Of a stretch of 64,000 nt of DNA, positions 7,424-59,192 are shown one piece after another. The translations under genes and the position numbers were made by a program. Below the pieces are notes generated by a model. The model was not told the origin of the DNA. It saw nothing but the letters and a program-made list of their open reading frames with translations, and did not search any database. The stretch covers positions 186,001 through 250,000 of the forward strand of contig MCFH01000062.1 in the NCBI GenBank assembly GCA_002104945.1. Reading direction: 5' to 3'. Positions within the stretch are counted from its first letter, which is position 1. Every line of letters starts with the position of its first letter. Origin of the DNA: Piromyces finnis finn (Eukaryota; Fungi; Neocallimastigomycota).

Positions 7424-7921
7424 ATTAATAACAATTACATCGATAAAATGATGAAAAATATCTTCTATTTATATTTTTCCTAAATACATTTATATTATAT
7501 TATAACTATTTATTTCTTATATATTATTATTTAAAATCTACACTAAAATCTTAATTATTAATAAATATTTAAACTATAACTATTTTTAGTAAAATACAAT
7601 TGGCAATTCAAATTAAGTACTATTCAATTTGAATATGTGCCCATGTATTATTGATATATTAAACATTTAATAATTATATACTAGATGTCTATTTCTATTA
7701 CATAACAATACTAAAACTTGGGGTTTGAATTGAGAATTTTAATTTATTTGTTAAACATTAAGAATAAACTAATAATTTATTTTGTTTTAAACTTTAATTA
7801 TTAATAAATAAATTATGTCCCATTTTCTTTTTCTGTAATATAATTCGTGTAACTTAAACAATGATATTTATGGCTTAAGTTACATTAAAGATATCAATCT
7901 GTGGCGTTTGATATCTTTACA
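7424..7921 (-). repeat. Inverted solo LTR, 5' part (related to but diverged from the intact element's LTR)
   Basis: Reverse complement starts TGTAAAGATATCAAACGCC and follows the LTR up to gatgtaattgttatt. Followed by TSD CTCCA at 7922-7926, matching 936-940. Confidence 0.92.
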
Positions 7922-51733: not shown

Positions 51734-53656
51734 TCTAAATAATATTTTTTTATAAAACTTGCTAAATCAAAAAATAAATATTATAAATTAATTAAAGTAA
51801 TAGATTAATGAAAAAAAAATAATAGACTGATTGAAAAAAAAAAATAAAAAGTAAAATTTTTTATACTAATTTAGTAAATTAAGCTTTCTTTTCTTCCCAA
51901 TATATTATATTATATTATTAATAGATTTTAATAATGATTAAAATAGTACAGCCACATGAAATAGTACAATAAGTTCATTTAATATATACCATAAAATCTT
52001 TTTTTTTATATAAGAAAAAAAAACGTTTAAACATAATATTTGAAATAAAAAAAATTCATATTAGTTTAATTATTATTTACTTTTTTATATTTTAATAATT
52101 TTTGATTGGAATCATTTGCAATATCTTTGACTACACTTTGTTTTTAATACTGTAAAACGAATTATTAAATTTTTAGATAATTACATTGTTCTATACATTT
52201 CCACATTCATTCATATTTTTTTTATATAATAAAAATATTTTACTATAAAATTAAAAAAATTAAACTAATTTTTTTTTTTATTTTCCTTTCACTAATCATA
52301 TTTTTATATTTCTCTTTATGATCCAAATGTTAAAATTATAATATAGCCATTTACATTTACAATTAAAGATTTTAATCTATATTATATTATATTATATTAT
52401 TTTTCTTTCTATACTTTACTATTATCGATAATGGTTGTTATTAAACACATTTCTTTGTATATGAACTTATTATTTTTTAGATATTTTTCGTTTTAATTCA
52501 ACCAAATTATTGCAAATAGTTCCATGTTTTATTGTATTACAAACCAAAAATTGTAAATATAAAAATTTAATTAAATTTTATTTAAATTAAAAATTTATTA
52601 ATTTCCAATAAAACTTTTTAAATTTTTAAATGACAATAAATTGTGAATTAAAATAAACTATTTATTAGAATACACTAATGAATATATTAATGATGAAAAT
52701 AATATAAGATGAATTTGATATAAAAAAAAATTTATCAAATTTTATGTATGGTATGTTCATCATTCCTTCATATATAATAATAATATAACATTAATATACT
52801 CGATTATTAAGTTAGTCATCCGAAAAATTACTATAATTGGATATAATGAATGTAATATTCATTCTTTAATGTAAAAAAGATGAAGTACTGAAATATGAAA
52901 TGTTCAATGAAAATAAAGTTAAAGTAAATCTTTATTACTAAAGATTTTCAAATAATTAAAATAATTATCTAAATTCTTTTAAAAGTTGTATTTAATTCTT
53001 TAATTCAAATATAATCATGTATTTTTCAACTTTTTCATATTAACCATATTTAAATTCTTTGAATGTAAGATTTTCAATTGTTGATTATTTTTATCTTTTT
53101 TTTTCTAGATATTACAAGTATGAAAATTAATTAATATTTTAATATATGAGTTTTTAATATGTTAAAATAATATTTAATTTTTCAATATTTTTTTTTTTTT
53201 TTTTTTTAATGGCATCAAATATTTTAAACTTAATTTTTCAATAAATCTAAATTTATTATTTCATTTACCAATAATATATTTGTTTTTTCCATTTATTTTT
53301 AGGATATATTCATTTAAAACTAAGTAAAAATTAAAAATATACATAATATACATAATAAATTTTATATCATTTAATTAAAACTATATACTTTTTTAAAAAA
53401 AAAATTAAAACTATTTTTCCAAGAATAATAAAATAATAATATATAATGAGATTTGGTTTAAAATGATATTAATGTATATAAAAATATTAATAATAAAGTT
53501 AAAATAATTTAAAATAAAATTTGTAATTGTAGGATTTAAATAAAATAAAATAAAATAAAATGTTTAGTATATTTATATTTACATTATAAATTGATTAAAT
53601 TCAGTTATTAAAATATTTTTTTATTTTTTAAATATAAACAATAAAAGCTTTAATAC

Positions 53657-53873
53657 TGTTAGAATATGTGAAACGTTATGTCACATGTATTCAAATGTAT
53701 TGAAATGTATTAAAACGTATTTGTATATATTGTATTTGATTATATGTTTAAGCCACAATGTAAATGTATAAATACATGTAGTTTTAGAAGAATGTAACGC
53801 AAGTAGTTCTTTATCATAAAATATATTAATAAAGTTGACATAATTATAAACCTAAATTAAACAACTCTTAATA
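53657..53873 (+). repeat. 5' LTR (217 bp)
   Basis: Matches 58263-58479. Confidence 0.93.
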
Positions 53874-54536
53874 GATTAAGAGTCTCAATGACTCTCATGA
53901 GAGAATATCAATGACTCTCATTGACTCTCAGATGATTCTCTGAAAGATGAATCAAACCGCCGGACACATTATGTCATAGGAGAAAACTATTGGAAACCCT
54001 AATCCCTACAATATAAGTTTTAATTGAAAATTATGAAATTTAGAGATCTAAAACTTTGAAATCTTGAAATCTCAAAAACTAAGTCACAAAATTGCCTAAT
54101 TAACAATACTGACTATATAGCGAAAGAAAACTCCGTCCAAGAAACATGGAACATTGATAATATTATACTTTAGACATAAATTAATTTATACTAAATAAAA
54201 TAATTTAGATTTAGATCTTAAATTTAAGAATAAACAAACATTTAAATTTAAAAATTAAAATTTATAATTTAAATTTAAGAACAATTGAAATTCAGAAATT
54301 TAAGTTGAAATTTAAAATTTAAAATAAATAAATTTATCCATTTTTAAAAGTAATTTAAATTTTAAACTAAACAATATGTTTATATTAGAAATAATAGAAT
54401 TTCATTCTCAACTTACTTTATTCACCACAAATAGTATAAATTAGCTAATAAAATCCAAAATTTTATTTTATATAATTATTTACAATTGAGTTATTAAATT
54501 TCATCAAATATATTAATATTATAAATACTCCAAAGA

Positions 54537-55841
54537 ATGAGATTAAGAAGCAAAGTAATATATTTTTTAAATATTTTTTCGACAATTTTAATTCTACCAT
54601 TGGTAATTGCTGAAAATCAAAAATGTCATGTAACCAATGTCGGAACAGGTGTTTGCGTTAATGAGGATCAATGTAAATTAAATGGTAAACAAACTGGCAA
54701 TGCTAAAGTATATCCAAAAATTTGTAAATATGACTCGGAAAAGATTAAATGCTGTATAAAGGATGTCGATACACTTACAGATGGAACAATTCTTCCAACA
54801 ACAGGAAAATGTAAAAATATAAATGAAGGTAACTGTTCAGAAGAATCTTACACGAGATATAGGAACCAATGCCCAGGAGATGATGTTGTTCAACTATGTG
54901 TTCCAAATACAAATCTAAATAATAATACAGATATTGATGATGTAAATTTAAATTTAAATGATAACTGTCCTGAAGTTACAGTTAGTCAAATGCTGCCAAT
55001 GTTAAATCCAGCATACACAATTGCTGAAGTTACAATAAAATTTATTGAAGCGTATAAAAATTCTAGGCCATCTACATATAATTATATATCTGATTTAGCT
55101 ATGGCAATTGGCCATTATAGAGGAAAGTCTGGAAAAACAGTACCTGCAAGCAATACTCTAATTAATGAAGAAATGAAAAAGAGTTTGAAATACAAAAATA
55201 TGATAAAAGAACTAAAAAAAATAATTAAAGATAAAGTCACAGATGAAAAAATAGAAAATAAAACTGTAATAAGAAATGCAGAAAATTCAGGTAGAGGACT
55301 TTGGTGTTTAACGTTAGGAAGCTATTATGTCAATATTGATTATGCTTTTTATCCAAAATCCGGATGGAACACTGTTAAAATTCATTTTTCAGGATATGAC
55401 ACATGGGATTTTGAACACATCAAAAAAGAGAAAGATCAAAATGTTCTTAAAAATTTATGGAATGGAATAAAAACTGGAATATATAATATTCTTGAAGAAG
55501 ATATTCCAAGTTTTATCGCAGGAGATGGTAAAACATATGATATTACTTATGATTTTTATGACGAAGTAACTTTTTTTTATGGATACTCACCTTCAGAGTA
55601 TTTTAATTTTGGGAAAAGATCTGTAGATGCATCAAGCGAAATATGTAATTTTTACACATTCAAATACATTGATACATACGACTACATTGATGAAGATGAT
55701 GAAGATGATGAAGATGACGAAATATGTTATAATTATTATAAAGATGAAAATGGTTCAATAAATTCAATTCACTTTAATATTTTTAACATTGTTATTATTT
55801 TAACTTCAGTCATATTCTTGCAATTAATCAATTTATATTAG
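54537..55841 (+). CDS. Secreted protein: Cys-rich N-terminal module, colicin-M-like putative toxin domain, KR site, acidic stretch, hydrophobic anchor
   Basis: Signal peptide, G.CV....C...CC.K and CPG...LC modules, HYRGKSG / TLGSY / YDTWDF / GKTYDI motifs, GKRS site, tail IVIILTSVIFLQLINLY. The ORF is certain; the function is inferred. Confidence 0.75.
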   Translation: MRLRSKVIYFLNIFSTILILPLVIAENQKCHVTNVGTGVCVNEDQCKLNGKQTGNAKVYPKICKYDSEKIKCCIKDVDTLTDGTILPTTGKCKNINEGNCSEESYTRYRNQCPGDDVVQLCVPNTNLNNNTDIDDVNLNLNDNCPEVTVSQMLPMLNPAYTIAEVTIKFIEAYKNSRPSTYNYISDLAMAIGHYRGKSGKTVPASNTLINEEMKKSLKYKNMIKELKKIIKDKVTDEKIENKTVIRNAENSGRGLWCLTLGSYYVNIDYAFYPKSGWNTVKIHFSGYDTWDFEHIKKEKDQNVLKNLWNGIKTGIYNILEEDIPSFIAGDGKTYDITYDFYDEVTFFYGYSPSEYFNFGKRSVDASSEICNFYTFKYIDTYDYIDEDDEDDEDDEICYNYYKDENGSINSIHFNIFNIVIILTSVIFLQLINLY

Positions 55842-56599
55842 AATTACTTAATTTCGTCAACTTTACAATATAAATTCATTAACATTTTCACATATATAAT
55901 TATAAATAATCATTTATTAACATACATAATTTCATAAAATAACATTATTGTTATTGAAAGCATACATATTTATTTCAAGTAAATATATTGTTTGTGTAAT
56001 AATTAAATACATTAACTACTACTATTTCAATGAGAAAATATTCTTTCTGCCATAGGGGAAAGAAAAAATATAAAGAAAATACATAAAATTTATACAATTA
56101 GAAACATGAACTAGAATAATTAAATATTATTTGATTAGTTTGCATAAAATATCTTATTGTAATGAAATTATGCAATGAACATTGAAACTATCCTTGTGAA
56201 AATGTCAATCAATTTCTTTATGATAATTTCACTCAAATCAGTATTATATAATTTAATCCAGTATACTATTCTTTGAATTAAATCATTATAACAATACTTT
56301 AAGATAATATTTAGCCTCAAAAGCATTATTTATATTATTGCTTCCTATAAAGCAAATATATTACTGGTCAAATGCTCATCCCGTAGGCTGTTATTGCTAA
56401 TATACATAGCAAATATTTCAAATGAGGTAATTTATTAAAGTTAGAAATGCTTAGCGTGAAATGAGCATATTCTACATATATATATACTTTGAATAACCTA
56501 GCGTGAAATGGGTATATTCAATAATATTTTAACAACTTATCATGATTTAACTTAGCGTGAAATGAGTTATATTCATAGATAATTATTAATGATGGTTTT

Positions 56600-56880
56600 A
56601 GACCTATATATATTTAATTTGGTCCCATCAATAACAATGTAGCACCTTCATAGTAAGGGCTCCTTAGATTTAGATGACATTGATTCATCATATTTATTTA
56701 TTACCAACATTCAAGAATGTTGTGACGCCGTTTTAAAATATAATTTACGGTGATTTAGTAACCTCATATATAAATCGCCACTTTCAACGTAGTGAGTGAT
56801 CGCCAACCAATTAGCTGACATTCTAATTAACCGAGCCGACTTCGATATAATTTAGAAGAACTTTATTCTCTTCAACAATC
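56600..56880 (+). pseudogene. Heavily decayed copia RNase H remnant
   Basis: aac caa tta gct gac att cta = NQLADIL, cf. the copia C-terminal QLADI(L/F)TK motif. No ORF survives. Confidence 0.5.
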
Positions 56881-57660
56881 GATATTTTAAATGTCATTAT
56901 CTTACAATATTAACTTGTTATAATTTTACTGGTATATCTACTTATTTTAATTTGAAGTAAAGAAATACATAATTGAGGAATATTTTATTCATTAGTTTGA
57001 TATTCTATGATTATCACTACATTAAAATATATTATCATGAAAATATTATTTCACTATATTTTAAAGGATAAGCAATTGAGAAAAATGAATGAAAACATTA
57101 GAATATGTTATTTATTATTTATATAGGTATTAATACTTATCGTATATGTTATGGAAAATTATTCATTATTATGAAAATTTGATGCAAAATGAATGAAATT
57201 TTATGAAATTTAAATTTCTCTTTTTCAAATCTAAGTATTTATTACTAAACATCTAGATTTGAGGGGGAAGTAGTGAATATACGAAATTTAAAATTCAAGA
57301 TAATAATTTTTGTTTCTAGTTAAACATTGGAAATAACTAAAACATTGCATAGAAACTAAGGCTTAATAAATAGAATGAATTGAAATTCAAATTGTAAAAA
57401 TTTATAAGATTCAATATGTAAAAATGAAAAGAACAAAATTTCAAATAAAAAGTAAAATATTCTTAAATATTATAAGAATAATTAATCAATACAAAAGGCA
57501 TAAAAGGAAGGAAAAACACCTAAAAGAAAATGTTAAAATTCAATATACATAAACTAAATAACTATTAAGAATTTAATTAAAATTTTACCATTATTAATTA
57601 GTATTTACAAATAGATTGAAATACAATTATGCTAATATTCTAAAGAAAATTGTAATTATA

Positions 57661-57895
57661 AGGACATAAAACCAGAGAGTTATCCATAGGTTGTCCGAAG
57701 AACGTAAAACCAAGAAGATTAACCATAGGTTGTTAAGAGAACGTAAAACCAAAAAGAGTTATCCATATGTGTTGTCATAAGGACGTAAAATCAAAGGTTA
57801 ACCATGAGTTGTTAAGAAAACGTAAAACCAAAGAGGTAAACCATGCGTTGTCATAAGGACGTAAAATCAAAGAGATAAACCATGTGTTGTCTATA
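57661..57895 (+). repeat. ~6 degenerate ~40-bp tandem repeats (ACGTAAAACCAAAGAG.TAACCATG.GTTGTC) in the element's 3' region
   Basis: Recurring acgtaaaa(c/t)caa and ccat..gttgt blocks. Confidence 0.8.
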
Positions 57896-58262
57896 ATTCT
57901 GTGTAAATCTCAGAGAGATTACCAATATAGTTTATAGGATAATGTAAAACCGGAAGGGTTTTCAATCCTTAATGGATGGTATAACAATTTATGAATATCC
58001 AATCCAAATTTTAAACTTTAATACTACCAAATTATACAAAGGTTTTCAGTTTATCCATAAAAACGAAGTTATAGGGTAATATTTAAATTCTTTAAAGCAA
58101 TTAGCGAATAATATATGTGAAATATTTTAAATTCCAATTAATGAAATATAAAAATTTTAAACATTAGATTTAGTTTATAGTTAATAGTTTAGAAATAATA
58201 AAATGCACATATTCACCAGCAAACCAAATTTTACTTAGTAGAAAATTAGGTTTGAGGGGGAA

Positions 58263-58479
58263 TGTTAGAATATGTGAAACGTTATGTCACATGTATTCAA
58301 ATGTATTGAAATGTATTAAAACGTATTTGTATATATTGTATTTGATTATATGTTTAAGCCACAATGTAAATGTATAAATACATGTAGTTTTAGAAGAATG
58401 TAACGCAAGTAGTTCTTTATCATAAAATATATTAATAAAGTTGACATAATTATAAACCTAAATTAAACAACTCTTAATA
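58263..58479 (+). repeat. 3' LTR (217 bp)
   Basis: Follows the PPT and is followed by TSD AATAC. Confidence 0.93.
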
Positions 58480-58712
58480 AATACATAGTCTTAATTATTA
58501 ATAATAATAATAATAATAATAAAGAAATAAAAAAAATATCCTATTGTCCCTATTGTCTTATTATGTTATTAATAAAAATTATAAATATATATATATTTAT
58601 AATTTTACTAGATTGGTAGAACTAGAACAGTGATTTTAAAATAATTTATAAAATCTATATAATTATTATTGCATAATATTATATATTATATAATATTATT
58701 ATTATTAATTCA

Positions 58713-59192
58713 TTTTCAACTTCCAAATTATAATTATCGAATTCGGTTTCTAAATCGTCCTCTTCAATTCTTTCATATTTTTTATTTATGTTCATTTTAA
58801 TTTTCTTTTTGTTCTGTTTTGTAATTAACTTTATTGACTACCTTCAAACTATAGAGTTCCTGACTTTTTTTAAATAATTAAATTTTTAAATGTTATAAAA
58901 AATAATGAATAATGAGGCATGATGAATTGATATGATAAATAAAAAAAATTAAGCAAATCAATTCATTGGATAATAATAATTATGAAAAAAATGTATTAAA
59001 ATAATTTGTAAATGAATCTTTTGTAGGTAGCTATGATTTTTACTTTTTTTTTAAATACATTCAATTACGTGAAGTGATTCTAATAATTAATCTTATAATG
59101 TGTTAATATATTATTATTAATTATGAATCATTGCTTATAGATGGCACTATTAAAATTCTAATAACTTTTATTTAAATATTGAAAATGTGGCT
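58713..59192 (-). pseudogene. Partial duplicate of the acyltransferase 5' end and upstream region
   Basis: Direct repeat of 63521-64000 (offset 4808). It covers only the first ~27 codons plus upstream DNA. Confidence 0.88.

Follow-up and report, generated by a model that had tools for sequence, protein, structure and literature searches.

Structure of the element

The window, the whole 64,000-nucleotide stretch of Piromyces finnis DNA that was analysed, contains a 4.8-kb element that includes a cargo open reading frame (ORF) and occupies positions 53652-58484. The element is bounded by two LTRs of 217 bp on the + strand, at 53657-53873 (5') and 58263-58479 (3'). Alignment of 53630-53900 with 58236-58506 gives 217/217 identical positions, and both the pairwise alignment and a repeat search reveal that identity ends sharply at both edges. 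A perfect 5-bp target-site duplication (TSD), AATAC, lies immediately outside the LTRs at 53652-53656 and 58480-58484. The polypurine tract (PPT), AGGTTTGAGGGGGAA, abuts the 3' LTR at 58248-58262 on the + strand, and a 20-mer across the PPT and the LTR start occurs at 28 exact places in the genome. The identical LTRs, perfect TSD and PPT described in the sequence-only reading of this DNA are thus all present. The LTR begins TGTTAG and ends TTAATA and so lacks the canonical TG...CA termini. Autonomous copia elements of the P. finnis genome also have TG...TA ends, indicating that these termini are a lineage trait.

The primer-binding site (PBS), GATTAAGAGTCTCA, directly follows the 5' LTR at 53874-53887 (+ strand) and is complementary over 14-15 nt to the anticodon arm of tRNA-Lys(CUU), TGAGACTCTTAATCT, as in half-tRNA priming. 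The sequence TGAGACTCTTAATCT is found in a tRNA-like context, with anticodon arm plus T-arm, at C227:117743. About 200 copia-type elements of the genome have this PBS 14-mer next to their LTR. The PBS opens a 663-nt leader (53874-54536, + strand) with repeated GACTCTCA boxes, the first ~130-220 nt of which are common to all cassette types of the family described below.

The leader is followed by the cargo ORF (54537-55841, + strand), which encodes 434 aa in four parts and, as claimed from the sequence alone, is intact, with no internal stop. An ORF scan between the LTRs found no other ORF of at least 60 aa. The non-coding 3' part (55931-58262, + strand) is family-wide, with 92-99% identity in at least 20 copies, and includes a tandem array of about six 39-40-bp units, detected by repeat search at 57679-57914 (+ strand). 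Erasure of gag-pol apart from a small remnant had been proposed, and all that is left is about 19 codons of a probable copia pol C-terminus, VIANQLADILINRADFDII followed by a stop, at 56796-56855 (+ strand). The same frame upstream is full of stops, and tblastx found no copia pol homology in the focal element beyond this remnant. By eye, VIANQLADILINRADFDII resembles the C-terminus ..SENMLADTLTKN.. of the in-genome copia pol L025.

A family with an exchangeable cassette

An internal LTR 30-mer has 94 matches in the P. finnis genome, and at least 41 LTR copies are 96-100% identical. Twenty sister elements with paired LTRs were cut from other contigs for comparison. Since 19 of these 20 sisters have their own, different, perfect 5-bp TSD, the duplication is not a chance finding. 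Sister LTR pairs that aligned without gaps have 0-2 mismatches. Three copies (L043, L044 and L045) that are inserted at separate sites, each with its own TSD, have the same ORF sequence, and the leader of the focal copy differs from that of its nearest sister, L031, by one substitution. The number of tandem units varies among copies (76-nt indels). The tree of the shared 3' part is a star-like burst with no sorting by cassette type.

The LTRs, the leader and the 2.3-kb non-coding 3' part are common to all copies; the middle slot differs. The focal copy has a type A cassette, which encodes a Cys-rich domain and a colicin-M-fold domain. Type B joins the Cys-rich domain of type A to a GH24 lysozyme (PF00959, E 9e-26), and type C has the colicin-M-fold domain with a different N-terminus and an extra C-terminal part. 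Type D is a decayed fragment of a cytoplasmic seryl-tRNA-synthetase (SerRS) with stops (E 9e-28 versus 3qne) and is the commonest cassette among the sampled copies (10/21). Type A was found at three sites and type B at six, and their TSDs all differ. Neither a TSD nor terminal inverted repeats of its own were seen around the cassette, and the same or swapped cargo is found between near-identical LTRs elsewhere, rather than cargo-less relatives with diverged LTRs. These results support the conclusion that the focal element is a young, non-autonomous Ty1/copia-derived LTR retrotransposon that transposed as a whole, intact ORF included. Recent mobility had been proposed from the sequence, as had a retrotransposon with a preserved passenger; the passenger is indeed intact and moves, but it is not a one-off, as the cassette slot is a standing trait of the family.

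Every colicin-M-fold-domain gene and every strong GH24 gene of the P. finnis genome sits inside family elements. Because all strong genomic matches are inside such elements and no stand-alone donor gene was found for the colicin-M-fold domain or GH24, capture of a host gene is argued solely by analogy with the SerRS cassette. The focal copy also shows mosaicism. A mosaic block at 55657-56156 (+ strand), which runs from the segment coding for the ORF's C-terminal tail through the stop codon into the 3' part, has 21-34 differences per 100 nt from the sisters, compared with 0-4 elsewhere, and its best match among the sampled sequences is 76%. Despite this divergence, the block still codes for a hydrophobic tail.

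A candidate source of the missing proteins is present in the genome. A 20-mer across the LTR end and PBS is exactly conserved at seven loci, 3.2-3.9 kb upstream of RVT_2 matches, with ORFs of up to 1542 aa. The LTR body and PPT of these copia elements differ from those of the focal family. Judged by this shared 20-mer, the copia subfamily is a candidate helper.

The focal element, including its ORF, is probably transcribed. In runs X1-X3 the depth over the element interior is hundreds to thousands, compared with 0-10 over the flanks, and it is because the flanks are uncovered that these runs are read as RNA. Zero-mismatch contigs cover copy-specific parts of the element (55081-55426; 55724-55985 in X1 and 55724-55972 in X2), and the RNA-type contigs match the cargo ORF exactly; contigs of this kind can reveal neither an LTR-to-LTR transcript nor its start or strand.

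The cargo protein

The cargo has a signal-peptide-like N-terminus, MRLRSKVIYFLNIFSTILILPLVIA, followed by an N-domain with eight Cys residues (aa ~26-130), a colicin-M-fold domain (aa ~158-350), an acidic linker and a hydrophobic tail. The C-terminus, ..ENGSINSIHFNIFNIVIILTSVIFLQLINLY, reads as a small-residue site followed by the hydrophobic tail, so the cargo is probably a secreted protein with a GPI-type tail. The predicted structure has a pLDDT of 80. The top 11 PDB matches of the model are all members of the colicin M family or the C-terminal domain (CTD) of the T6SS effector BtpeA, with Z scores of 8.3-4.7 over 134-159 residues, and the first unrelated match has a Z score of 3.5. The best match is pectocin M2 (Z 8.3, 154 residues aligned), with colicin M (ColM) and BtpeA at Z 5.4-5.7. 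According to the model, the domain at aa ~158-350 has a colicin-M-like fold. At the sequence level, the cargo has no Pfam match at E <= 1, Colicin_M included, and a profile built from 33 homologs found no colicin M chain among PDB sequences.

The motif of colicin M is DxYD(x5)HR (PMC8469651). The core motif of the cargo domain, D288-T-W290-D291-F292 (codons at 55398-55412, + strand), appears to correspond to the DxYD of colicin M. Among 33 aligned homologs, W290 and F292 are each conserved in 32, D291 in 30 and D288 in 25. No HR dyad follows DxWDF at the right spacing.

Relatives provide further context. A bacterial homolog is encoded in an island resembling effector-immunity pairs, adjoining a Tlde1-domain gene, and the N-domain of the cargo is fused to GH25 in a metagenomic relative. 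Several homologs bear Chitin_bind_1 modules, which makes a fungal wall a conceivable target. The cargo probably has its place on the surface of the fungus, from which it would attack the synthesis or the structure of bacterial cell walls. The cargo had previously been called an effector. It does appear to be secreted, but the idea of a host-targeting effector was dropped: P. finnis is a gut-dwelling anaerobe and does not cause plant disease, and with its colicin-M-like fold and toxin-island relatives the cargo reads as an antibacterial-type surface protein.

Proposed mechanism, alternatives and known systems

Taken together, it is likely that the focal copy belongs to a recently active, non-autonomous Ty1/copia-derived family in which a cassette slot stands in place of gag-pol and antibacterial-type cargo is copied by a helper. 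The focal element retains only the cis parts that helper copying needs: LTRs, PBS, leader, PPT and the non-coding 3' part. In the proposed mechanism, the whole unit would be transcribed from the LTR, an autonomous copia element would supply the proteins that package and reverse-transcribe the RNA, and integration of the DNA would create the 5-bp duplication. Through template switching, co-packaged RNAs may exchange parts of the cassette among copies as well as with mRNAs of the cell, which would account for the SerRS pseudo-cassette, the swapped domains and the mosaic blocks.

It could be argued that the ORF is a passive hitch-hiker, intact through a recent burst and useful to neither host nor element, and the focal copy by itself fits this description. 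Its ORF differs from that of L031 at a dN/dS of 0.74, and under neutrality the chance that its first 375 codons would have stayed free of stops is not small (P(no stop) = 0.25). Furthermore, spread needs no cargo function, as the dead SerRS of type D is the most numerous cassette among the sampled copies. The family as a whole argues against a passive passenger, making it improbable. Reading frames are kept open in 10 of the 11 element-borne ORFs found, and indels within ORFs are all in frame (3 or 6 nt), with non-coding indels of arbitrary length. In neutral simulation, a lysozyme pair separated by 100 substitutions would remain free of stops with P = 0.001. The lysozyme copies have a dN/dS of 1.8-2.6, and the observed values of 1.97-2.58 exceed the neutral expectation, which has a median of 0.8 (P <= 0.002). 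By these sequence comparisons, the lysozyme versions of the cassette bear signs of diversifying selection. Between types A and C, the colicin-M-fold domain has a dN/dS of 0.37 across saturated dS. The hydrophobic tail coded by the diverged block and the probable RNA runs also speak against a passenger without use. The claim that the cargo benefits the host nevertheless goes beyond the focal ORF, for which neutrality is not rejected; the selection signal comes from the sister lysozyme copies and the whole family.

Two other readings concern what the protein does. The signal peptide, Cys-rich ectodomain and C-terminal hydrophobic anchor have the general layout of an envelope protein, and an ORF-bearing slot is a standing family trait, as might be expected if the ORF were the element's own env-like surface glycoprotein for cell-to-cell transfer instead of cargo. 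However, GH24 lysozyme, the colicin-M-fold domain and the GH25 of the metagenomic relative point to enzymes against bacterial walls rather than fusogens, the element spreads even with a dead SerRS fragment in the slot, and no gag or pol is present for a particle of its own; an env-like role is extremely improbable. A less remote alternative, which is still unlikely, is that the target of the domain is a GlcNAc-containing wall, fungal or other, rather than bacterial lipid II, with remodelling of the fungus's own wall or competition against other fungi as its role. Chitin_bind_1 joined to the domain in several homologs, the missing HR dyad of ColM and a GPI-type tail that would tether the protein on the fungus's own surface are consistent with such a target. 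On the other hand, the significant structural neighbours are all lipid-II-degrading bacteriocins or a T6SS effector, the bacterial homolog adjoins a peptidoglycan effector of Tlde1 type, and the sister cassettes and shared N-domain go with muramidases that act on peptidoglycan.

A broader function for this helper-copied family is possible, albeit doubtful: a retro-mobile system that shuffles and amplifies antibacterial surface weapons, with gut-bacteria-driven diversifying selection keeping the ORFs open. Because helper-packaged RNAs would recombine, toxin modules (lysozyme, colicin-M-fold and other hydrolase-like parts), a shared targeting module and an anchor could be re-assorted and pasted as new expressed genes. 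A literature search found no description of retroelement-shuffled antibacterial genes or of a colicin-M-fold domain in a fungus. The results place such a domain in a fungus, within a young family that holds all genome copies found of two antibacterial-type gene kinds, swaps their domains, and carries genes that are kept open and probably transcribed. With this family, the idea that a retroelement copies and shuffles antibacterial weapons borrowed by a eukaryote can be put to the test on a specific example; the ecosystem is of rumen type, with competition between fungi and bacteria.

Gene capture by LTR retrotransposons is already known, mostly with fragments as the outcome; capture by maize LTR retrotransposons has reportedly been the subject of a published study. 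Maize Bs1, the gene-fragment LTR elements of maize and rice, and LARD-type derivatives are gene-transducing, non-autonomous plant elements. Such elements keep LTRs, PBS and PPT and have lost gag-pol, as the focal family has; they carry cellular sequence in sense and are mobilised in trans, which probably holds for the focal family too. The plant cases are mostly fragments or chimeric pseudo-ORFs, whereas the focal family has complete secreted-protein genes, probably transcribed, in a reusable slot with interchangeable versions and, unlike the plant cases, bears all genome copies found of its cargo gene kinds. Acutely transforming retroviruses are replication-defective and helper-dependent, with a cellular gene in place of gag-pol-env and template switching between co-packaged RNAs. 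The focal family would resemble these v-onc retroviruses in its defectiveness, helper dependence, replacement of the element's own genes by a cellular gene and reshuffling by template switching. However, they carry a growth regulator, whereas the focal family is an intracellular fungal copia-type element with extracellular, enzyme-like cargo. Copia and Ty5 use half-tRNA priming by initiator Met tRNA; the PBS of the focal family likewise pairs with a tRNA anticodon arm and not the 3' end, but its putative primer is tRNA-Lys(CUU).

The cargo itself shares its fold with the colicin M family and the BtpeA CTD (Bacteroides T6SS), and its DxWDF appears to sit at the DxYDF position of ColM. Unlike the colicin M family, it lacks the HR dyad and any sequence-level match, is encoded by a eukaryotic host and, where the bacterial proteins have uptake domains, carries a signal-peptide-like start together with a Cys-rich module and a GPI-like tail. 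Finally, Starships and ToxB-HLE, a Helitron-like cargo-carrying element of Pyrenophora (bioRxiv 10.1101/2025.11.13.688278), resemble the focal family in that a mobile element raises the copy number of an ecologically relevant gene for a secreted protein within the genome of a fungus. Those are DNA elements, whereas the focal element has LTRs, moves through RNA, measures 4.8 kb and offers a slot for a single gene.

Structure and family of the element

The window is very AT-rich (GC 24%), and all of the features claimed from sequence alone (LTRs, TSD, PPT, pol remnant and intact ORF) are present in it. An exact LTR alignment had been proposed as a check; when 53630-53900 is aligned with 58236-58506, the direct repeats (53657-53873 and 58263-58479) are the same at 217 of 217 positions and similarity ends at both borders. 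The TSD AATAC (53652-53656 and 58480-58484) immediately flanks both LTRs, and the PPT AGGTTTGAGGGGGAA (58248-58262) lies directly 5' of the 3' LTR. A second PPT-like run, AGATTTGAGGGGGAA, is found inside the element at 57256-57269, 1 kb upstream of the real PPT, possibly left over from an older 3' end or from a nested relative. The leader carries repeated GACTCTCA boxes. The nearest proteins in the database carry the name Piromyces finnis. The sole ORF of more than 52 aa inside the LTR pair, at 54537-55841 (+), encodes 434 aa as read without a spliced model. The copia pol remnant is VIANQLADILINRADFDII followed by a stop codon (56796-56855), about 19 codons in a frame that is stop-rich elsewhere, and is similar to a copia pol C-terminus containing SENMLADTLTKN at another locus (L025) of the same genome. 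A tblastx comparison with the loci collected found no further pol remnant in the 3' part shared by the family.

A search of the 56.46-Mb assembly (232 contigs) revealed at least 41 LTR copies at 96-100% identity and 94 occurrences of an internal LTR 30-mer. The search for other copies with the same LTRs yielded 20 additional paired-LTR elements with the same or swapped cargo, which were excised for comparison. A perfect 5-bp TSD is found in 19 of these 20, different at each site, and LTR pairs alignable without gaps have 0-2 mismatches in most of the copies. The distinct TSDs and near-identical LTR pairs indicate true recent retrotransposition, rather than genes that lie between two solo LTRs. 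The copies L043, L044 and L045 share one ORF sequence and occupy three sites, with the TSDs TGGAT, TAAAC and GTTTC, and the version carried by this copy, type A, is also found as three copies at three sites. At L034:2918-3386 (C24:905417-905885) and C200:349990-351149, two to three family LTRs adjoin in tandem or lie near one another, which may reflect nested insertion or recombination.

The LTR is common to all copies, as are the first 130-220 nt of the leader (some pairs share up to 430 nt) and a non-coding 3' part of 2.3 kb (55931-58262 in this copy), which is 92-99% identical across at least 20 copies. The slot between them differs in content. Type A (this copy, L031 and L032) has an ORF of 432-434 aa. 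Type B (L038 and L041-L045) has an ORF of 400-401 aa with a Phage_lysozyme/GH24 domain in the middle (PF00959, E 9e-26); its first ~135 residues match type A at 77-82% identity, and the C-terminal tail is also the same. Type C (L040) encodes 514 aa, with a different N-terminus, a domain 54% identical to type A residues 177-384, an extra C-terminal part and the same tail. An NlpC/P60-like assignment of the extra part, considered for its Cys and a His further on, is not claimed, as Pfam and PDB sequence searches were empty. Type D (ten copies) lacks any ORF of at least 100 aa and contains a decayed sense-strand fragment of a cytoplasmic seryl-tRNA synthetase with stops and frameshifts (E 9e-28 to Candida SerRS 3qne); L039 derives from type D by deletion. 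At the cassette borders, neither inverted repeats nor duplications belonging to the cassette were found, and sisters carry cargo. Thus, neither a cargo flanked by its own TSD or TIRs nor a set of cargo-free sisters with diverged LTRs, the two findings named beforehand as contrary to a mobile cargo carrier, was encountered. What stands of the sequence-only reading is a young, helper-dependent LTR vehicle with an intact cargo; its account of the nature of the cargo needs correction, and so does the extent to which it treats a benefit as shown.

Priming and helper candidates

The 14 nt past the LTR, the PBS, recur after the LTRs of about 200 copia-type elements in the genome. The PBS complement occurs at C227:117743 as TGAGACTCTTAATCTCA, followed by a T-arm-like GTGGGTTCGA; judged by its sequence, this match belongs to a tRNA-Lys(CUU)-like gene, of which it forms the anticodon arm. 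ARAGORN detected no tRNA genes in the window, nor in the family loci L001-L050, the first 50 collected. The exact 20-mer that joins the LTR end to the PBS occurs 36 times in the genome, about 25 of them from this family. Seven of the 36 sites lie 3.2-3.9 kb upstream of same-strand RVT_2 matches that belong to one copia subfamily, with ORFs of up to 1542 aa, and these seven loci are candidates for the helper. The internal LTR 30-mer and the 20-mer spanning the PPT and LTR start are absent at the RVT_2-linked loci, and other copia groups share the PPT and LTR start at one mismatch. The search for an autonomous partner produced candidates with the LTR end and PBS of the family, but with an unlike LTR body and PPT. 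Helper candidates lie at C123:1-7500, C227:6500-13500, C191:155500-162500 and C159:261500-268000; a further group, with a near match to the PPT, lies at C37:6700-12000 and C111:9100-14500.

Other loci have parts of this arrangement. At C46:896363-901031 the exact 20-mer accompanies an RVT_2 ORF of just 560 aa, with a PPT-like site 184 bp past the RT domain; this element may be a deletion intermediate on the way from helper to parasite. At C152:619538-623379 and C208:151351-155192 the 20-mer is followed after about 880 bp by an ORF of 483 aa whose N-domain is 40-41% identical to that of the cargo protein. A one-mismatch copy of the PPT and LTR-start 20-mer lies 3.8 kb downstream, and the LTR body differs (no 30-mer match). 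These two loci are probably a further cargo-bearing element type in a related LTR family. On two metagenome contigs of GC 20% (L053 and L054), a 746-aa gene with the domain found in the center of the cargo protein is followed by LTR-like pieces (L053:3074-3336 and 7567-7752; L054:3706-3968) that are 70-87% similar to the LTR/PPT region of this copy, indicating that a second AT-rich organism, presumably also an anaerobic fungus, has a related LTR family.

Mosaicism, selection and probable transcription

Divergence between this copy and its type A sister L031 is blocky. The LTRs are free of differences and the 663-nt leader has 1; per 100 nt, the differences number about 2 in the ORF body, 21-34 at element positions 2001-2300, and 0-2 past about position 2500. 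The diverged block (within 55657-56156) spans the ORF tail with its stop codon and runs into the start of the non-coding sequence, and the protein end it encodes retains a small-residue site and, after it, a hydrophobic tail. No closer relative of this block was found among the collected copies or by genome search (best 76%). In a tree of the shared 3' part, the branches radiate in a star-like burst, the cassette types do not form clades of their own, and type B is present on both an older and the young backbone. Co-packaged retroelement RNAs recombine. From the blocky divergence and the tree pattern, we infer recombination between element RNAs.

Within the genome, 10 of 11 element-borne ORFs are open. 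Every indel inside the ORFs is 3 or 6 nt, whereas the adjoining non-coding parts have indels of arbitrary lengths. Lysozyme pairs with 100-102 substitutions have Nei-Gojobori dN/dS values of 1.97-2.58, compared to a median of 0.8 in neutral simulations based on the spectrum of substitutions in the non-coding parts of the same elements (P <= 0.002); only 0.1% of the simulated sequences for these pairs stayed stop-free. The central domain has a dN/dS of 0.37 between types A and C, with dS saturated. Between this copy and its nearest sisters the signal is weak, with an overall dN/dS of 0.74-0.76, and the first 375 codons would stay open under neutrality with P = 0.25. Selection is thus shown for the family, but not for this copy alone.

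Three sequencing runs from this organism (X1-X3), each with 28-45 million letters of contigs and labeled RNA by an automated guess, give summed depths of hundreds to thousands across the element interior, compared to flank depths of 0-10 (53487-53860) and 0-2 (58536-58722). A deep interior with nearly bare flanks would not be expected of a DNA run. Contig coverage gives no starts, ends, strand or full LTR-to-LTR RNA, and the 5' LTR is inseparable from the 3' LTR. Contigs with zero mismatches span the parts that distinguish this copy, 55081-55426 and the tail block at 55724-55985 (X1) and 55724-55972 (X2). Loose contig ends also reveal type B and type D cassettes in X1-X3. In X1 and X3, contigs open with 18-19 A's just before 54074, within the leader, which could be an artefact, the sequence of another copy or a transcript end.

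The cargo protein

Judged by eye, the cargo protein has a signal-peptide-like N-terminus and a GPI-signal-like C-terminus. No Pfam family matched the whole ORF or either domain at E <= 1. In sister copies the 8-Cys N-domain is also joined to GH24, and in the metagenomic protein P0057 to GH25. The predicted fold of the N-domain, modeled from 5 sequences (pLDDT 77.8, five models in disagreement), has no PDB match at E < 1. The ESM Atlas gave zero feature matches, and its structural neighbours at TM <= 0.5, a cluster partly annotated as DUF3289 and RHS-type proteins, are leads only.

A search of 1.8 billion representatives yielded 53 relatives of the central domain, and those looked up are metagenomic. 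Some contain Chitin_bind_1 modules, and the contigs of three sampled relatives have a GC content of 20%. A model from 33 sequences (pLDDT 80, pTM 0.70) matched one kind of solved structure only: colicin M, pectocin M2, syringacin M, PaeM and the C-terminal domain of the Bacteroides T6SS protein BtpeA (Foldseek E 1e-3 to 0.09; VIA Z 8.3-4.7 over 134-159 residues, compared to 3.5 for the next unrelated structure). A bacterial relative, P0045 (29% identical), is on a contig of GC 53% (locus L052:2543-5295). Behind it come a small ORF, a Tlde1-domain gene that likewise has a small ORF, and an IS transposase. The same locus contains internal repeats (~85%) of gene starts. The layout appears typical of effector-immunity pairs, and the locus looks like a shuffling effector-immunity island. 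In P. finnis, all strong genome matches to the colicin-M-fold domain and to GH24 are within family elements.

Given the predicted fold, the bacterial relative and the lysozyme sisters, an antibacterial, cell-wall-directed role is the best reading of the cargo; the chances that lipid II itself is the target are roughly even. A literature search found no work on antibacterial genes carried by retrotransposons or on colicin-M-like proteins in anaerobic fungi. Pfam and PDB sequence searches, the latter with a profile of 33 homologues, revealed no relation to colicin M and no colicin M chain. The most conserved stretch among the central-domain homologues is H-F-x-G-x-D288-x-W290-D291-F292. The corresponding motif of colicin M is D226-K-Y-D-F-N-A-S-T-H-R, in which D226, Y228, D229, H235 and R236 are essential (PMC8469651). 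Comparison of the two motifs indicates that the acidic core is present in the cargo domain as well, whereas the HR dyad is found only in colicin M.
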